Origin: Klebsormidium nitens
Taxonomy: Eukaryota > Plantae > Klebsormidiophyceae
Assembly: GCA_000708835.1 (NCBI GenBank)
Contig: DF237165.1
Coordinates: forward strand, 1-64,000
DNA length: 64,000 bases
Reading direction: 5' to 3'
The notes below the pieces were generated by a model. The model did not search any database and had not been told where the DNA came from. It worked only from the letters and a program-made list of their open reading frames with translations. Positions 11,601-63,890 of this stretch are shown in pieces (positions within the stretch are counted from its first letter, which is position 1; every line of letters begins with the position of its first letter). A program made the position numbers and the translations under genes.

Positions 11601-14600
11601 GTTTGACACAATTCTCATAACCACAATTGTGCCTGCTTCGCACCCAAACCTACAGGCTGGCCGTTCTCGGGGTGACAGGCCTATTATTGCTACATCTGAA
11701 GGCCTTATTCTTGTCGTACCAAACGGAACGTTGTAAGAACTCGAGTGCTTTTCTACCTTCAAACGTGTCTCGTGTCCTGTCCGGGCAGGTGCCGTCGTAC
11801 CCGAGCGAGATCGCGATGGCGTTCATCCAGGAGGAGCTGGGCCTGCCCTGGTACGAAATCTTTGAGGAGCTCAGCCCCGAGCCCATCGCAGCAGGTCAGC
11901 CCTCCAAGCGGCCCCCAGTCGGAAGTGCTCTTTCAGACCCGCTTGCAAGTGACCAAGACGTCCGACCGATTCCTCAAAGCTCCAATCCCTGTCTTCTTTG
12001 CAACTTCGAAGATCATTGCGCCTGAGGTCAGAGTAGCTCCAGACTGATGCACGTACCATGGCCAAGCATGGGACGCCCCGTCAATCTGCGAAGCTCACGG
12101 TCCAGTAGATAGAGGATTTCTGTGAGCGAATTTCCTGCGTCACTTTTGTGTGGCGGCGCTTTTGTGGGCGTTGTTGTAAATTCGCCCGTATGTTTGTGCA
12201 GCGTCGCTGGGCCAGGTGTACAAGGGTAAGCTGCGCAGCAACGGGGCGGCCGTGGCGGTCAAGGTGCAGCGGCCGTACGTCCTCGAAACGGTACGGGCCC
12301 CTTCTAAGGATGTTGTGCTTACTGGAGGCGTTGTGGGTCCTCGTTGCCTCCTTGCACCAAATCATGAAAGTGGGCCGTCAAAAGGGTCGAGCGTTGTACA
12401 GTCTCTGTAAGCGGCTGCCTCTTGCTGATTTCCTTTTCATGGTGCATCCGTAGATTAGTTGTTTCCAAATTATTGACCTTGTGAGACCTAAGCAGAAAGA
12501 ATAGTGACCCTTAATTCTGAACTTTACTTTCCGCTTCAGTTCCCGCTCTACCGGCCTTGGGCAGTTGAACACGTATCCAGGGCAGTCACTCGTAGCCCCA
12601 CCCCCCCTGACCTCGTTCCTGCTGGCGCGCAGGTGACGATCGACCTGTTCATCATCCGCAAGCTGGGGCTGGCGCTGCGCGGCGTGCCGCAGATCGCGAC
12701 GGACGTGGTGGGCCTCGTCGACGAGTGGGCCGCGCGCTTCTTCGAGGAGCTCGACTACCAGCGGGAGGGCCGCAACGGCACGCTCTTTGCGCAGCAAATG
12801 GCCGCAGACTTGCCGCAGGTGAGGCCGCGCCTGCGCGCTCGCACAGCGCACCATGGTTGCCAGCCGAACAACTGCATTGTGACTTTCCCGTCTCTTGATC
12901 TGCTGACTATCCCACCGTCTTTTGATATCTTCTCTGCATGCTCTCTCTCAACGCCAAAAAGATGGCGAATGCCTCTGTTCATCAGTTGCGCGAGGTCATT
13001 TTGACAGGATCCTGTGCTCGCATGCTTGAGGTTATTGCACTAAGGGGAGTGCGAGCTGCTCCCACATACCCGTTCAAGGTTGTCAGCGACGAGCAGACCC
13101 TGCGATAGCAACGCTAGCATGAAGAGAGACGCACTCGGGCACTCTGATATTCTATCCAGTTCTCCGCTCAGCGTATCGTAGACCATAAGGGGCCCCTGGG
13201 TGGAGAGTCATGTCAGCTTCGTCCGGCTGTTACCAGCAGTCATGTGAGGCTGCGCCGGGCTTCTGAAGCTGACTCCGAGCACGTGCCGCAGGTGGTCGTC
13301 CCGACGACGTACCCCGAGTACACGTCGCGCAAGGTGCTGGTGACGAGCTGGCTGGAGGGCGAGAAGCTGAGCCAGAGCACGGCGGACGACGTGGGCGACC
13401 TGGTGAACATCGGCGTCATCTGCTACCTCAAGCAGCTGCTCGACACCGGCTTCTTCCACGCCGACCCGCACCCGGGGAACCTCATCCGCACGCCCGACGG
13501 CAGGCTCGCCATCCTAGACTTCGGTGAGGCGCCGCTCGATGGCAATGAGCCGGTAATTCATGGGGTGGGCTTCAGCGCGCACAGCGTTGGATTTTTTGCA
13601 GACAACTGGGCTGGTCTACCAAACGTGACCCGTGAAGTCCTCCTGAAGTCCCCTTTTTGTCCTTGTGCTCGGCCGTTTTCCCACTAGTACCATCGGCCAA
13701 GCGGACGCTCCCGGTCTTTGTAGGAGAGGTATTTGCGTGTCTTTACTTGTACTCCTGCTGTGGCGCGCTGCCGGCCTGACGTTGGTGGCGGGGTGCGTGC
13801 AGGGCTGATGACCCAGATCACGGAGGACCAGAAGTACGGCATGATCGAGGCCATCTCGCACCTGATCCACCGCGACTACGAGGCCATCGTCGAGGACTTT
13901 GTCCTCCTCGACTTCATCCCGCCAGGGGTGAGCCGCCACCCCGCCCTGCACACTTGCGCACTGAGCGCAAGTGTCTCCGACTGCCGCCTTTCTCGTTTTG
14001 CGCTTTCGCGCTTGCTCGGGCCTGACTTAACCGCAAGAGCAACTTTGTGGATCTCTCATTGCTAAACTGCATCGGGTCTCTGCCAGTCCATCATTCTCAG
14101 GCCGCTTGACCTGTGAGCAGTCTGCCTCCACCATGAGGAATCAGCACTGATAATGCCCTCTTGATGATGCTGATTGAGCTTGATCCTGAAGAGCAAGCTT
14201 ACTCGTGAGCGGACCCGTCGTCAACGAAACAAGAGTTAGAAGCGCCCCGAGGCTGACCCTCCCGCCGCATTGTTTCCCCTAGGTGGACCTGCGCCCAATC
14301 TTGCCGGTGCTGGCCAAGGTGTTCGACCAGGCTCTCGAGGGCGGCGGCGCGAAGAACATCAACTTCCAGGAGCTGGCGGCGGACCTGGCGCAGATTACGT
14401 TCGACTACCCGTTCCGCATCCCGCCCTACTTCGCGCTCATCATCCGCGCCATCGGCGTGCTGGAGGGCATCGCGCTCACCGGCAACTCAGACTTCGCCAT
14501 TGTCGACGAGGCCTACCCCTACATCGCGCAGGTGGGGCGGCTGGGGGAGGATGGAGGCTTGCAACTATCTGGCCTTGAAAGTGCGGCCCGATATCAAATC

Positions 14601-27720: not shown

Positions 27721-27907
27721 GCCACGTGGCATCACGTGGCCGAAGGTGTTTTTGAATCTTGCCTCTGCCCACAAGGACCTCGAACGAGCGGTGCATACAT
27801 AACCTAGCGTTCTGCCCTTCGTCTTTCAGCGGATCGATCCGGGGCGCCCCCCGGCCCAGGGGCAGGACCTCTGTCCAGGGGTGCTCCACGGAGCTCCCCC
27901 GGAACAA
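27721..27907 (+). repeat. Structured element family copy A: G-box 27721, GCCCAC 27767, TACATAA 27796, 66-nt core 27838-27903
   Basis: Core TCCGGGGCGCCCCCCGGCCCAGGGGCAGGACCTCTGTCCAGGGGTGCTCCACGGAGCTCCCCCGGA is identical to copy B and 65/66 identical to copy C. Confidence 0.9.
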
Positions 27908-28563
27908 TTCAGCACCGCCCTCAACCCTACTCCCTCCTCTAGCACCAACTTTTAACCCAACAACAGCACAATCCAAAACCAACCAAATTCTGAACAAACC
28001 CAATCGAACCAACAACCAACCAGCATCACTTCTTCCCCAGCCAGAGGGGTCTGCTTTTAATCATAACACATGAACCTATTCTGTGGTAACCGCAAAGCGG
28101 TTTTGTTCAGAACCAATGCAGATTACGAGCATACTCCTCACCTCGTTAGCAAAAATGACGGATTCGACAACCTTCACAGGTCAGGTAGAACAGCGCTTGT
28201 ACTCTAAGGTGCTGGAATCGATTGTTCCATGTTCGAGTTTGCCAGAGCATGCACATTCTGGTACGTCTTGAACAAAACCACATGCATGACGCCGAAAGCA
28301 GCTAACTTATTAGTTGTTCATCTCCAAATGACGGTTCGCCAGACATCTTGTTCAGCCAAACGCAGAATTGACTGGAAACATGCGCTTCTTTGAGAAGTTT
28401 GAGCAGGTTCAGTTGTATGGATGACAAGTGAGTGTGTGACGTTGGGGTTGAAGCATGAGAGGTTTGCGAAATGTGAGTTTGTTGTAATGAATGTAGGCGA
28501 GGTTTGGGAGGTGGGTGTTTGATTTAGTGATCTGTTTGGGGGGTAAGTTGTGTGATGGGTTGT

Positions 28564-28749
28564 TCCGGGGGAGCTCCGTGGAGCACCCCTGGACAGAGGT
28601 CCTGCCCCTGGGCCGGGGGGCGCCCCGGATCGATCCGCTGAAAGACGAGGGCAGGAACTCTGCCTTATATACACCCTGATTGTCTCCATTATCTGTGGGC
28701 CGGCCCAGAACGAACGGCCACTTCCTACCGCTCGATATTGCCACGTGGC
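28564..28749 (-). repeat. Structured element family copy B (core 28564-28629, TATATAA 28671-28665, GCCCAC 28700, G-box 28740-28749)
   Basis: Exact reverse complement of the copy A core, with the same GCCCAC-to-TATA spacing of 29 nt. Confidence 0.9.
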
Positions 28750-29645
28750 TTTCATCGGACGGTTCTGAGACAATTACGCGAAAGCGGACGCGCCTTGCGG
28801 CACATCGTCCGCTTCGCGCTGGAGGCAAGCTGTCCAAAGCAGGGAAGTGAAACCGGCCCTTCAGATATAGAACGCGGAATCAAGAAACTGTTCTCTTGCT
28901 CTAAGATTCCTCTTCGCCGGAGCCTCCTGTCAAAGTGCGCGGACGAATGGATCCGGGCTTGCTGCAACCCTTCTTGAGCCTCTTGTGGCGCCGATATTGG
29001 TAGAGCCCACATGGGCGACTGACTTGCTCGGAAGCGAATCGCTAAGGACCATCTTTTCGACGTATAATACAGTGAGCATAGGGGACTATACTTTTAATGA
29101 AAGCTCCTAACCAGTATCCTTGGTTCGACAGCTTGCATAGATAGATACGAGTCATGCGTGCACATGTAAGATTGCCCATGTCTCGAAATGATCTTGCATA
29201 GATCTTGCATAGCAGGAGTTCCAGCCTTTGGCGGAAAGAACAAGCTCAGAAGAAAGCGCACTTGCTTCTTCGATCTGATAACCTTTTTCTAGTGTCAGCG
29301 TGTGCGTTTTGGAACCAGGAATTTACTAAGGTACGAGAGCCGCTCACTGAGAGTCACTCAAAGTGAGAGCCGCTCACGATAGTCACTCGCCTCACGTGAG
29401 TCACTCTGGTCACGCGGCTCTCGTGAGCCGCTAGTGCGCAGTATTGCCCGAATCTTTGCTCTTTATGGCCAGTGAGCAGTACATGTTGGCTCACGGATTC
29501 AATTGGAGCCGGCTCTCGATTGATCATCGGTTCATGCAGGTTCAATCGACGGTCGAAATCTGATGTGACCACTGACCCACAGATACTGATTTCTTGGAAT
29601 AGGCGTAATATAATCAGAAACCACGTACGAAGGTTCACCTTACGT

Positions 29646-29898
29646 GGGGCTGTAGCTTAATCGGTAAAGCGCCAAACCGCCGGTTCAAGAAACCGGCCCG
29701 TGGTCACAATGACCTCGAGGGGCCGCTTTCCCTTCTAGGGGGGTGATCCCTTGGCGGCACGGAGCTTGTCAAGCTCCGCGCTGCCTGCCGGGCCCCAGTG
29801 GTCCGGAGCCCGCGCGAAGCTCAGGAGTCCTCAGGAGGTTCCTGAAAGGTTCCTCCTGAGGAAGTTGAGAGATGCGGGTTCGAGCCCCGCCAGCTCCA
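29646..29898 (+). ncRNA. 253-nt tRNA-framed structured RNA (Ala-type acceptor stem, D arm and T arm; large multi-helix insert replacing the anticodon/variable arms)
   Basis: Acceptor GGGGCTG/CAGCTCC-A with G3.U70 and A73. D arm GCTT-AATCGGTA-AAGC. T arm GCGGG-TTCGAGC-CCCGC (29874-29890). A box 29653-29664, B box 29877-29886, upstream TAATATAAT 29606-29614 and T5 run 6 nt downstream. Confidence 0.75.
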
Positions 29899-29903
29899 AG
29901 ATG

Positions 29904-29908
29904 TTTTT
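29904..29908 (+). terminator. Probable RNA polymerase III terminator (T5)
   Basis: TTTTT begins 6 nt after the discriminator base of the tRNA-framed RNA. Confidence 0.6.
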
Positions 29909-30007
29909 CTTGACCCCTGCTGTCCAGTGCAATTCACTTATCTCTGAAATTGTCATCAAACCTAGCGTCAACTCATCATCTGAGTGATTGTCCTGAATAT
30001 GCACCAA

Positions 30008-32251: not shown

Positions 32252-32446
32252 GCCACGTGGAACCATCGGACGGGTCGCACTCGATTTGGGTTGCAGGCGG
32301 AGTCCGCCCACAAAGAAATTGGAAAGGCAGCGCATGCATAAGGCAGCTTTCTGCTCCTGGTTTATCAGTGGACCGATCCGGGGCGCCCCCCGGCCCAGGG
32401 GCAGGCCCTCTGTCCAGGGGTGCTCCACGGAGCTCCCCCGGAACAA
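32252..32446 (+). repeat. Structured element family copy C (G-box 32252, GCCCAC 32306, TGCATAA 32335, core 32377-32442)
   Basis: One substitution versus the A/B core, the same 29-nt GCCCAC-TATA spacing, and a G-poor C/A-rich tail. Confidence 0.9.
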
Positions 32447-33353
32447 CCCTTCCCCAAACCATTCAGCCACTTCCTACTTCACTCAACCGCCACCTCATCA
32501 ATTGCCACCACTCCTTCCCTTCTTCAATCGCCCCGTATCACCCGCTACCACAACAACCCAAACACCTCATGTATCCAAGAACCACCAATTAAATTTCTTC
32601 TCAAATTATCCCGTATGTGAATGATGCTTTTACGCAGATGGACAAGCCGCGTGCTCGCGTGACATGTGGGTTTGTTCAAAGCTGTTCCTTGCTTATGTCA
32701 ATGCGACATTCAATTAACGTGGAAGTTGTCAATGAGCAATCGTGACAAATCCTTTGGCAAGCAAACGTCTGGCATGCTTGCACTTCACCTCCGGTCCTGA
32801 TAAAATCACCACCGTCTATATAAACGTCTGATTAGGTCTGCTTCCAGCGGTCAATCGATGCACTTTCGGTTTGGAGCTACACAACGACCAAGGGATGGAC
32901 AGATCGATAACAAACAACCACGGCTAGCAGCCGCGACTTCTTTTGCGAGATTCCGCACACTTATATCGGATTTGTTCATGGACGACGTCAATTCTACAAA
33001 AACGGACCGATCCGTCATGAAGGGCTCAGATGACGAGCTTCGATAAGGCTGCACGAAATCGAGATTTTAGATACAGAATTGTCAGACACCTTTCTAAGGA
33101 CAAAGCACCATCTAATCGTACATACAAAGGACCTCGGCCTGATTGGGCGCTCGGCGCGTGCTTTGGCGGAAGTTTCTGCCTTTGATCAGCGGAGCTCTAA
33201 TCGTACCTTAGTGCAACGTTAATCAGGTCATGATCAAGGTTGGCAAGATCTTATGTGGCCAAGAATTCGATGGTGATTTGCAAAAGCTAACCCTTTGAGG
33301 GGTTGATTTGGGGGAGGGGGGAAATCTGGCGGGATTTGAATTGTACACACCTT

Positions 33354-33513
33354 TCCGGGGGAGCTCTCGAGCTCGTGGAAAAACTCCATACAGAGGTCGG
33401 CCTGCCTCTGGAGCGGGGGGCGCCCCGGATCGCTCCACTAAAAGATGAGGGCCAGAACGCTGCGACCGTGAATTTTCAGAAACCCCTTTTAGCCGCCCAT
33501 GCTGCCACGTGGC
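33354..33513 (-). repeat. Structured element family copy D (diverged; core 33354-33429, G-box near 33504)
   Basis: Retains the TCCGGGGCGCCCCCC 5' end, the GAGCTCCCCCGGA 3' end and the CAGAGG/CCTCTG helix. Confidence 0.75.
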
Positions 33514-35401: not shown

Positions 35402-38400
35402 TCAGTTTGCCAGCATGGCAGGGGAGGGGAAATGGTCCATGTCGAAGAACGGGCTCAAGCCGTCAATCGCCTCTGGGCATTCCAGGCTCTGTGCGTAGTG
35501 CTGGAGCGCGGCCGCGGCCGCGAACACCTCGTCGTCGCTCAGGTTGTTGACGAAACGCGCCCCGCCGATACCGCTCATCAGCGGCACCCGCTGCAGGCCA
35601 TCGCGCGCGATAGTCATATCGCGGAGCCCCTGCATAAGAAGCAACATTTCTCCACGTTAGTCCAACTATTAGACTACAGCGCCTCCGTTCGGACAACCAA
35701 ACCGACGACGGACGGACACATAGTAGGAGCTCTGATACAAAACGATCGTGGTCCTAGCCGAAGAGCGCGTCAAAACACATCTTCACTCCGCACGTGAACG
35801 TGAAGCAGAAAGCCTGTCGAGACCTTCACTTCATAGTCACCAGCGGATTCAGTAATCGAAGGGCCACAAAAACAGTGTGCGCGCACCTTGATCAGCAGTT
35901 TCGGGGTGACGGAGGCGTGCCAGAAGGGCAGCCGAAGCGCGCGCATGATGGCGAACACGCGGCGCTTGTGGTCGGCCGTGATGTAGCCGCGCCGGTGGGC
36001 GATTTCGGTGGTGAGCGCCATGTCGATGTTGACCGCCTCGCCGTGCAGCAGTTCGTCGTTGGTCTCTAGCGCCGCCATCTCAATTTCGGGGGAGAACGTA
36101 TGGCCGTAGTCGACGACACGTGTCAGCACGTGCTCGTACAAGTTGCACTCGAGCTCCTCCAGCATACCCTGGATGGACCGCCGCAGCACAAGGCGCGCAG
36201 CGGGCGTCTGCACGGGAATACGATTGTGGTTAGATACAAGCCACTTGGTTGACACTTCACAAGCCGGGTTGTTGGTTATGGTGTTTGCACCGCACACAAA
36301 GATTTCGCCACATTATCACTCATCCTAAGCAACTCCGAGGACCTATCCTCGTCAAGCTTGAAAGGATCGTCGAAGTTCGCTGAGTGGATGCCGAAAAGGC
36401 GAGGCAGACCTACGCCATTAAATTCGAAATCTGCACCATGAAGGCAGCATTCGCCAGAACGTTATATGCGATAATCCAGCTTATCTGTCTTCGTCCCATA
36501 TTGCCTCACCTGGAATCTGGACGCAATGAGCTGCGCCGAGTGCTGCTCGAGCATGTGGAAGAGCGGCGCGTCCTTAATGGCGGCCATCTTCAGAATCTCC
36601 GCGGCGCCGTTGCTGAGGTGGCGGTCGTCCAGCGTTTTCAGGAACGCGCGGTCGTAAAACACACCGAGCGGCGGGCAGTATGTGCCCAGCTTGTTCTTCT
36701 TGTTGTGGAAGTTGACAGCAGTCTTCACGCCGATCGACGCGTCGACAACGGCCATCAGAGTGGTCGGGATCTGCCCAAATTGTGGAGTAACGTCAGCTAA
36801 CCGTCGAGGATCGGTGAATCCTAGTGTACCGTTCACACCGTTCCGGTGAATCCTAGTGTACCGTTCACACCGTTCCCGTTCAGTCGCAGATCTGGCGGCT
36901 TCTTGCTCGGCGACGGATACAAAGGAAATGATAATGAAGACAAGGATTTGGGTGACAGGGATCGAGTCCGCCTGCTCCCGAAGACACATGCAACTGTTAC
37001 GCCCAGACCTTTGTAGTAAGCGAAGGCCGAACTCTCATGAACCGAAGGCCAACAATTCCCAAAAAGGAGCAGACCATTGACATGCTTGCTTATGATCCCC
37101 ACCTTAATGACGGGTGTGTTTCGTCGGTACAGGTTCGCCGCCAGCCCCACGACGTCCAAACACACCCCACCTCCGATGGCAATCAGTGGCTCCCGTCGCC
37201 TGGGTCAAACGGAAGGGGCTCAGCCTCTGGCAAAGAGGGCGTTATCAGTCGAAAGGCCGTGACTTGCACAATCACAAACTTACGTACATAATCATCAATC
37301 GCCTCGAAACATGCTATGCAAGTACATCGCGATGTTAGTAACACTCGTCAAGCAGACTACATCTCGTAGATATCCTCATACCTGTGCAGTTTGAAGTCCT
37401 CAATCTGCTGAGCAACCTCGAACACGAGGTCGAAGCTCTTGTTGGCCTCGCAGAACGGCAGCTGGATGATCTTGCTCTCTACCCGGTGGTGCTCCAAGTA
37501 CTGCACCATCACATATTTACGGTCAATCATAGGGTCATCAACAGTTGCCAACTTAAGACATAGTCATCCAGAAAGCACGAACTGAGAACCTGACTGAGAT
37601 CAAACAACTGATATTGATGAGTATAGTCTCTAACTCAGACCAATCTTATGAAGTTGGACAATTAACAACCAGCCAAAGTGCACTGTTGATGACCAGAGTG
37701 CACTGTTCATGACAACCCATCAGAATTGTGCGAGTCTGACTTCACAGCGAAGGGACTGATGCACAGGAAATACCAACTTCTGCGCACCTTGTCTAGCTTG
37801 GCACCGTGCAACCGGTACCAGTTCTCATCAACAACCAGCAGTCTTCTCAGCTGCTTGCCAGCACTCCTGGTGTAAGGGGCCACCTGGGGCGGGAACGTGT
37901 TGGGCACGATGCCTGACAGCAAGGCCTGGACAAAGAGGGGGTCAATTAGTGTGGCGACGCGAGGGTTGTCAGACCTGTTGTTGAACAATAATGTACCTCT
38001 CTGTATGTCTTGAACACAGGTCTGCCTTTCCTGTGTCTGTTCACAGTGCTAATCACAGGATTCACAGTGTTGATCACACTGGATTCACGGCGCTAGTCAC
38101 CGGATTGCAGCGGCAATGGTGACTTCCAAGCACATGAGTAAGCTGTGAACCAATCACTGAACATTGTGATGAGGACAGCAGAATGACAGGTTAGTGAACA
38201 TTGCTTACCATGTTGGAAGGGTTGAGGAGATCCTCGCACTCCTCTACGCTATACATGATGGGCTGGGTTGCCTGGACCGTAAATTTTCCCTGGAAACAAA
38301 AAAGATCTGTTGAGCACGTGTCTGCATGCACTAGCTGTTCATATGCAGAACTTGTGCCAACTCCCTTCCAGAGATGCTCTCAGCAACAAAATTACAATGT

Positions 38401-63623: not shown

Positions 63624-63890
63624 GCCACGTGGCATCATCGAAACGGCAGGACTCTTCTTTAGCAAGCTGGCCCACAAGAAACCCCCAGACTTTGAGGGTA
63701 TAAATGCAGACGCGGTTCCTCCGAGAGGCGCCGACGCCAGAGGCGTTTAAGGGACGGAGTCCCGAGTTCAGGGCTGAGCCCAGGGGGAAACCCGGCCGCC
63801 AGGGCAGAGCCCTGTTCAATGAGTGCCTCCTTCCCCAGGGCAGAGCCCTGTTCACACCAAATCTTCCCAAACGCACCAAACCACCACTGC
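63624..63890 (+). repeat. Distant member (F) of the structured element family
   Basis: G-box 63624, GCCCAC 63670 (46 nt after the G-box, as in copy A), TATAAAT 63699 (29 nt after GCCCAC), two CAGGGC-AGA-GCCCTG-TTCA hairpins and a C/A-rich tail. Confidence 0.65.

Follow-up and report, generated by a model that had tools for sequence, protein, structure and literature searches.

The window, a 64-kb stretch (64,000 nt) of a Klebsormidium nitens nuclear contig, holds a single gathering-level Rfam match, a tRNA at 29646-29898 on the forward strand (+). The match to RF00005 scores 35.3 bits against a gathering score of 29 and places 71 of the 71 model positions, with a 196-nt insertion in place of 15 anticodon-arm positions. 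A rescan of 29550-30000 at E-values up to 10 added only chance-level extras to the tRNA model. The 5' shell (29646-29671, +), aligned with posterior probability near 1 and read directly, comprises the acceptor 5' strand (29646-29652, with G3 at 29648), U8 and A9, the D arm (29655-29670) and G26. The 3' shell (29874-29898, +), placed by the Rfam alignment and a B-box scan, comprises the T arm (29874-29890), the acceptor 3' strand (29891-29897, with U70 at 29895) and the discriminator A73 (29898), after which CCA is not encoded. It is preceded by a 4-nt variable region, AGAU (29870-29873, +). The acceptor stem reads GGGGCUG/CAGCUCC, and the tRNA-Ala identity set is complete by direct reading, consisting of the G3.U70 wobble (29648/29895) and A73. 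The D stem (GCUU/AAGC) encloses a loop, AAUCGGUA, with G18, G19 and A21, and the T stem (GCGGG/CCCGC) encloses UUCGAGC with U54, U55, C56 and A58. U8 and A14 are present, A15 can make a Levitt pair with U48 of the variable region, and the bases for tertiary contacts are all retained. The earlier note on this DNA had described an acceptor stem with G3.U70 and A73, a D arm and a T arm, and the Rfam alignment bears this out. Neither shell half has a second copy in the window with 3 mismatches allowed, and self-BLAST detected no other copy of the insert or of the body in these 64 kb; because neither insert nor shell recurs in the window, a local repeat or transposon was rejected.

Pol III-type signals lie within and around the shell. 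The A box (TAGCTTAATCGG) is intact inside the D arm, the B box (GGTTCGAGCCC) is intact inside the T arm at 29877-29887 (B-box scan), and a TTTTT run read directly as a Pol III terminator (29905-29909, +) lies 7 nt past A73. A TATA-like box, TAATATAATC (29606-29615, +), with an AT-rich core TAATATAAT at 29606-29614, is located about 31-40 nt before G1. All four signals had been listed in the earlier note and can be read at the locus. In addition, a USE-like motif, ACCCACAGAT (29575-29584, +), lies about 70 nt before the RNA 5' end. In plant snRNA-type Pol III promoters a USE (RTCCCACATCG-like) stands at a fixed distance upstream of a TATA box, which in turn precedes the start by about 30 nt. 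The USE-like/TATA pair here resembles such a promoter in sequence: the CCCACA of ACCCACAGAT is followed by 25 nt, AATATAAT, about 38 nt and then G1. Pairs of CCCACA, 22-25 nt and a TATA-like box occur four times in the window compared with a mean of 1.07 in shuffles. The remaining three pairs have a 22-nt gap, and two of these three precede copies of a neighbouring multi-copy small-RNA-like element; the word CCCACAGATA is common to the USE-like motif and the region upstream of the small-RNA element at 28699(-). The surroundings comprise about 10 kb without recognisable coding sequence, and the nearest Pfam match is a dehydroquinate synthase at 35.8-37.0 kb.

The anticodon arm is the one part of the cloverleaf that is not retained. 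Standard-mode ARAGORN detected no tRNA or tmRNA in the window, and the arm of a decoding tRNA, with five stem pairs and a 7-nt loop that includes U33, an anticodon and R37, is absent from the element. After G26 the sequence continues CCAAA CC GCC G, and the candidate 3' strand is GUUGA or UUGAG. The best rebuilt stem, CCAAA/GUUGA, has 3 Watson-Crick pairs at most, and its loop (CCGCCGA) has C33 rather than U33 and would present a Gly-type GCC triplet on an Ala-identity body. None of the single excisions tried by hand yields U33-NGC-R37. The sole intron-allowed ARAGORN parse, a tRNA-Arg(CCU), was rejected as implausible (intron at 32/33, two anticodon-stem mismatches, C37 and a 12-nt variable region). 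The absence of a valid anticodon arm, proposed from the sequence in the earlier note, is thus supported, as is the statement that this is not a tRNA with a canonical intron, the exons rebuilding no cloverleaf. Lacking a usable anticodon arm, the RNA cannot decode. Rfam recognises no family here besides tRNA, whose model fits the shell alone: over 29550-30000 at E-values up to 10, no covariance model matched for a group I intron, and SRP, RNase P/MRP and snoRNA families were likewise without a match.

The insert has a predicted structure of its own. With the tRNA shell constrained, it folds into an unpaired linker followed by six consecutive GC-rich hairpins, and 71% of the positions of the insert are paired. 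The linker CCAAACC (29672-29678, +) follows G26, its CCAAA standing where the 5' strand of an anticodon stem would be expected to start. The six hairpins, all on the forward strand, are hairpin 1 (29679-29697, +; GCCGGUU/AACCGGC, loop CAAGA; mean pair probability 0.98), hairpin 2 (29699-29717, +; CG+GGUCA/UGACC+CG, loop CAA; 0.80-0.93), hairpin 3 (29718-29751, +; AGGGG.CGCUUUCC/GGGGGGUG.UCCCU; 0.65-0.90), hairpin 4 (29753-29785, +; GGCGGC.CGGAGCUU/AAGCUCCG.GCUGCC, loop GUC; 0.96-0.99), hairpin 5 (29786-29816, +; UGC+CGGGC.CC/GG.GCCCG+GCG; 0.86-0.98) and hairpin 6 (29820-29869, +; 0.83-0.99). Hairpin 6 adjoins the variable region and consists of a 5-bp base (CUCAG/UUGAG), an 11-bp helix, a UU/UU internal loop, CCU/AGG and a GAA loop. 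Hairpins 4 and 6 are DNA palindromes by self-BLAST. Most helices picked out by eye in the earlier note recur in the constrained fold, with mean pair probabilities of 0.97 for CCGGTT/AACCGG, 0.93 for GGTCA/TGACC, 0.96 for CGGAGCTT/AAGCTCCG, 0.98 for CGGGC/GCCCG, 1.00 for the 10-bp CCTCAGGAGG/CCTCCTGAGG and 0.88 for the closing CTCA/TGAG. The GCCAA/TTGGC helix that was thought to close a domain has a mean pair probability of 0.00 and is unsupported; the GCCGC/GCGGC pseudoknot also scored 0.00, in a fold model that cannot represent pseudoknots.

Folding of the whole 253-nt RNA is more stable than that of shuffles (z = -5.5), and the same holds for the insert by itself (z = -5.6). For 68 random 194-nt segments drawn from the window, the mean z is -0.09 with sd 1.26, and only one segment is equally low. 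The insert therefore lies far outside the window background, and its structure is not a by-product of base composition. Since the base of hairpin 6 adjoins the variable region, it occupies the place of the anticodon-stem 3' strand, and in the modelled fold hairpin 6 probably stands in for the anticodon arm. Hairpins 1-5 would then loop out at the 26/27 junction, a geometry that we infer.

The locus is conserved in a related organism (run X8, 80-99% likeness). Contigs spanning 29649-29887 are about 81-83% identical, differing by 21-28 substitutions and 18-20 gap positions, and the flanks on both sides align at about 80-84% identity, so the locus is orthologous. The insert is about 76-79% identical and diverges as fast as the flanks, so its sequence may be nearly neutral. 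Substitutions were assigned to structure for the best-supported ten among 40 of the 115 differences; seven of these ten lie at unpaired positions, in loops and one bulge (binomial P = 0.009, with 71% of the insert paired). Of the three changes in stems, two preserve pairing: G.U becomes A-U at 29725 (G>A, hairpin 3) and A-U becomes G.U at 29823 (A>G, hairpin 6). The third, 29832 C>G in hairpin 6, has no compensation visible among the differences listed. By hairpin, the three differences in hairpin 1 (29688-29690) are all in the loop, those in hairpin 2 are unpaired (29701 in the bulge and 29707 in the loop), and 29844/29845 of hairpin 6 are in its loop; hairpin 4 carries small deletions at 29765 and 29769 in one X8 contig. 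An extra C follows 29676, within the would-be anticodon loop. Upstream, the TATA-like box differs by 29608 A>T, 29610 A>T, 29611 T>A and a T inserted after 29613 and remains AT-rich, and none of the well-supported X8 differences listed falls in the USE-like motif. The avoidance of stems by these sequence differences is suggestive of structure conservation. Beyond X8, the exact 26-nt word of the 5' shell had no match in metagenome contigs, a 23-nt variable-loop/T-arm word matched unrelated prokaryotic tRNA-like loci only, and a 23-nt T-arm/acceptor word searched against genome contigs matched bacterial tRNAs and tmRNAs only.

Read depth and assembly joints in X8 indicate that the element has relatives. 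From a level of about 164, depth climbs to about 830 in the 5' shell; in the 3' shell it reaches about 2,400, a 10- to 20-fold rise that points to many paralogues. Joints at 29675>29855, 29676>29864 and 29768>29863 connect the same shell through other or shorter inserts, and paralogue contigs align to the linker up to about 29676-29678. X8 contigs break at 29649 and 29887; given a 31-mer assembly, the next 30 nt at each site (29649-29678 and 29858-29887) would be exact repeats among paralogues, so the shell halves are apparently identical across paralogues and the inserts differ. Ala-type shell halves around other inserts are thus indicated by X8 depth and joints and also by shell-only contigs in a second run, X5. 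The earlier note had proposed an undescribed Pol III tRNA-mimic noncoding RNA. The tRNA(Ala) shape, the Pol III-type signals and the lack of any other Rfam family agree with that proposal, but the element does not stand alone: it probably belongs to a hitherto undescribed family of RNAs derived from tRNA.

Run X5 yields about 41 Mb of contigs compared with roughly 104 Mb for DNA runs under the same species label, and its status as RNA is a guess. It covers one third of a 701-nt query around the locus. A 261-nt contig (depth about 2) is identical to 29654-29887, unspliced, with both flanks uncovered, and this exact unspliced coverage without flanks fits RNA and not DNA. This single, probable RNA contig indicates transcription as a discrete unit with the insert retained. 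The contig runs on into 27 non-genomic A/G-rich letters (AAAGAAAAAGAAAAAGAAAAAAAAGAG) that start inside the T-stem 3' strand. We read this tail as a decay intermediate caught by a poly(A)-type library; alternatively, it could come from a paralogue sharing the last 30-mer, and contigs cannot define true RNA ends. No splice joints were seen in X5, in an assembly and library type (poly(A)) that would miss a 73-nt RNA. Two more X5 contigs, one at a depth of about 130, match only 29866-29905 and then continue into other sequence, which indicates expressed paralogues.

Together, these observations are best explained by a stand-alone Pol III-type gene with its own promoter, encoding a tRNA-Ala-derived RNA that does not decode and that belongs to a multi-copy family, a reading to which we assign a probability of roughly 60%. 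The family would have originated from a nuclear tRNA-Ala gene and would occur in K. nitens and its relatives. Transcription by Pol III would most likely proceed from the internal A and B boxes, aided by the USE-like/TATA pair, and would stop at the T5 run to give a product of roughly 253 nt. As all elements of the tRNA L-shaped core are kept, trimming by RNase P and RNase Z followed by CCA addition would be expected. Hairpin 6 (29820-29869) would probably stack in the position of the anticodon stem and hairpins 1-5 would loop out, and the RNA would accumulate with its insert retained, unable to decode. The conserved shell could serve as a functional handle for processing, stability, tRNA-binding proteins and possibly alanyl-tRNA synthetase (AlaRS), and the insert could be a rapidly evolving structured segment that serves as cargo or spacer. 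AlaRS needs only G3.U70 and A73 and leaves the anticodon unread; with this identity set intact, alanylation of the element is plausible, judging solely from those sequence features.

Two other readings are unlikely and account for part of the same evidence. The first is a precursor tRNA with one or more giant introns, from which the tRNA splicing endonuclease would remove the insert, the intron perhaps persisting in linear or circular form. Of the nuclear tRNA genes of K. nitens, about one in three has a canonical intron (PMC13578239), and the similarity between paralogues ends near position 31-33 (29676-29678) and resumes at about 29855-29866, beside 38/39, much as exon boundaries would. C32 (29677) could pair with G29860, 3 nt before the putative 3' splice site, and the insert's rate of change, close to that of the flanks, is what an intron would show. 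The element also shares with intron-containing pre-tRNAs (the 37/38 introns, the archaeal tRNA-Trp box C/D intron and the disrupted tRNA genes of Cyanidioschyzon merolae; PMC3728597) the arrangement of tRNA halves around a long, fast-evolving internal segment. In contrast to these systems, its exons rebuild no anticodon arm: the stem has only three Watson-Crick pairs, the loop places C33 and a Gly-type GCC on an Ala body, and no cut gives U33, NGC and a purine at 37. Furthermore, the constrained fold shows no evident bulge-helix-bulge motif, X8 has its extra C inside the would-be anticodon loop, and the sole RNA contig is unspliced, contigs being of a kind that would miss a 73-nt product. For streptophyte algae, a 2026 review of tRNA genes in photosynthetic organisms lists only canonical introns, and it regards a length of about 64 nt as exceptional in green algae (PMC13578239), a length that the insert exceeds several times.

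The second, likewise unlikely, is a tRNA-Ala pseudogene: palindromic or hairpin DNA would have broken its anticodon region, its surviving boxes would still drive transcription of a functionless RNA, and the similarity of shells among paralogues would reflect recent origin or gene conversion. Divergence of the insert at the flank rate, the gain or loss of segments (for example, the 94-nt difference at 29768>29863), the palindromic character of hairpins 4 and 6, and a transcript whose A/G-rich tail begins inside the T arm like that of a decay intermediate would all suit such a relic. It accounts less well for shell halves that appear identical across X8 paralogues whose inserts differ, for insert differences that avoid stems (P = 0.009), for a fold z-score far beyond the window background and for the retention of the upstream USE/TATA pair.

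Very unlikely is a tRNA-scaffolded precursor, in which the shell's sole contributions would be processing sites and a Pol III promoter, with the hairpins released as Dicer-type or snoRNA-like small RNAs. The tRNA-miRNA genes of murine gammaherpesvirus 68 and plant tRNA-snoRNA genes are such tRNA-linked small-RNA precursors, and a series of separate stable hairpins, with one shell carrying differing inserts across the family, is compatible with the idea. The longest perfect helix, however, is 11 bp, less than a typical Dicer substrate requires; box C/D and H/ACA families give no match at E-values up to 10; the RNA contig crosses all hairpins uncut; and the 3' acceptor strand closes the shell, a feature not required for releasing downstream hairpins. 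Highly improbable is a eukaryotic analogue of tmRNA, with an Ala-charged domain and an internal frame rescuing stalled ribosomes, perhaps after import into an organelle: the G3.U70 and A73, the large internal domain between tRNA halves, the 23-nt T-arm/acceptor word identical in several bacterial tmRNAs and a 48-codon open frame (29713-29856) recall tmRNA, but ARAGORN in tmRNA mode (also at a relaxed threshold) and the Rfam tmRNA models (E up to 10) are negative, the D arm is full as the earlier note had remarked in setting the element apart from tmRNA, no resume codon or pseudoknot layout is evident, a frame of this length is expected at 65% GC and shares no words with any predicted protein, and paralogues carry different inserts.

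Comparison with known systems places the favoured reading, a self-promoted gene for a non-decoding tRNA-Ala-derived RNA, between several established classes. With ordinary nuclear tRNA-Ala (RF00005) the element shares the acceptor with G3.U70 and A73, the arms, the tertiary bases, the boxes, the T-run and the un-encoded CCA; it differs in having about 198 nt of hairpins for the 17-nt anticodon arm and in lacking U33, an anticodon and R37. Bacterial and organellar tmRNAs likewise assemble an Ala acceptor and T arm from two RNA ends around a large internal domain, but the element is encoded in the nucleus, has a complete D arm and shows no tag frame or pseudoknot pattern, and the analogy is topological only. 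In SINEs only the head is tRNA-like; behind it come a body and a tail that is A-rich or of LINE type. BC1/ID RNA derives from tRNA-Ala. The element shares tRNA-Ala ancestry, an internal Pol III promoter and multiple copies with tRNA-derived SINEs and BC1/ID RNA. A tRNA-derived SINE was nevertheless rejected because the cloverleaf is closed by its own 3' strand, T5 follows, no A-rich DNA tail is present and paralogues share the shell and not the body; flanking direct repeats were not obvious by eye at the locus.

Use of a tRNA body as a processing or stability handle is common to engineered tRNA scaffolds and mascRNA/MALAT1. Ponchon and Dardel (2007) reportedly built tRNA scaffold RNAs with a foreign structured RNA in place of the anticodon stem or as an extension of it. 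Those scaffolds are man-made, and mascRNA is a small RNA of Pol II origin, whereas the element is natural, multi-copy and self-promoted. The nearest published case found, also from a streptophyte, is the GUT15/CR20 tRNA-like RNA of Arabidopsis, which has normal acceptor, D and T arms, lacks a canonical anticodon stem-loop and receives CCA (PMC6152437). It was found in the deacylated tRNA fraction only and may be charged (PMC6152437). The GUT15/CR20 RNA is tRNA-sized and cut from a Pol II lncRNA, whereas the element is about 253 nt long with its own promoter signals and terminator; in addition, the GUT15/CR20 acceptor stem differs and is without G3.U70, judged from published primers (PMC6152437). 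No description of a family with a tRNA-Ala shell around such inserts was found in the searched literature.

Non-decoding tRNA-shaped RNAs are known as isolated cases, namely tmRNA, mascRNA, the GUT15 tRNA-like RNA and viral tRNA-like ends. What is distinct here is a self-promoted nuclear gene family in which a chargeable-looking tRNA-Ala body surrounds differing structured RNA. Standard tRNA annotation silently misses genes of such design. If the inserts were giant introns after all, they would exceed the roughly 64-nt green-algal introns several times and might be a natural source of circular RNA. A bolder proposal, which we consider quite unlikely, is that the alga keeps a natural tRNA-scaffold family of Pol III-made, CCA-tailed, alanine-charged bodies with interchangeable cargo that would have roles other than normal decoding, such as donating alanine, diverting tRNA-binding proteins as decoys or taking part in a reaction akin to ribosome rescue. 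If the RNAs prove stable and charged, they would provide a test system for how AlaRS, EF1A, exportins and quality control deal with an anticodon-less tRNA, and would reveal a natural cellular use of the tRNA body as a carrier module.

The tRNA-like gene (window 29646-29898(+)), a tRNA(Ala) shell with a hairpin insert in place of the anticodon arm, is flanked in the window by four copies, one of them partial, of a GC-rich element of ~100-150 nt, at 27764-27907(+), 28547-28700(-), 32303-32459(+) and 33399-33463(-). This element matched no Rfam family. All three full copies are preceded by GCCCACA(A/G), followed 22 nt later by a TATA-like box in two of the three; the 32303 copy carries TGCATAA in place of that box. 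A further pair, GGCCCACAAG and TATAAAT separated by 22 nt, lies close to the window end (63671-63745(+)), and may be the promoter of an additional small-RNA gene whose product extends towards or past the window edge. The closest recognisable protein-coding sequence to the tRNA-like gene is a set of 3-dehydroquinate synthase exons (35770-36989(-); Pfam DHQ_synthase and DHQS_C). Among 68 random 194-nt pieces of the window, only 13871-14064 had a folding z-score approximately as low as that of the insert: about -5.6 over 20 shuffles, and -3.3 over 200 shuffles of the + strand. This piece includes a perfect 10-bp hairpin, ACUUGCGCAC/GCGCAAGUGU.

Three prokaryote-like metagenome contigs have Rfam tRNA matches (L019 976-1083, L022 1126-1240 and L024 713-800) that are 88-115 nt long. 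The anticodon regions of these loci hold 15-45 additional bases, and none of the three was called by ARAGORN. They have in common with the tRNA-like gene a 23-nt variable-loop/T-arm word, whereas their acceptor stems are unrelated to its own. On two other metagenome contigs (L016 7196-7419 and L026), a gene for YrlA, a bacterial Y RNA-like RNA, lies ~65 nt 3' of a separate tRNA-like 3' half bearing the same T-arm word, and the two are probably a pair of Y-like RNAs.

In run X5, which has the same species label as the DNA runs and is only presumed to be RNA, the contig matching the tRNA-like gene has a loose end behind window 29887, where AAAGAAAAAGAAAAAGAAAAAAAAGAG, a heteropolymeric tail of A and G that is absent from the genome, is attached within the T stem. 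This tail may be a sign that RNAs of the tRNA-like family are tailed in the alga by an exosome- or TRAMP-type pathway.
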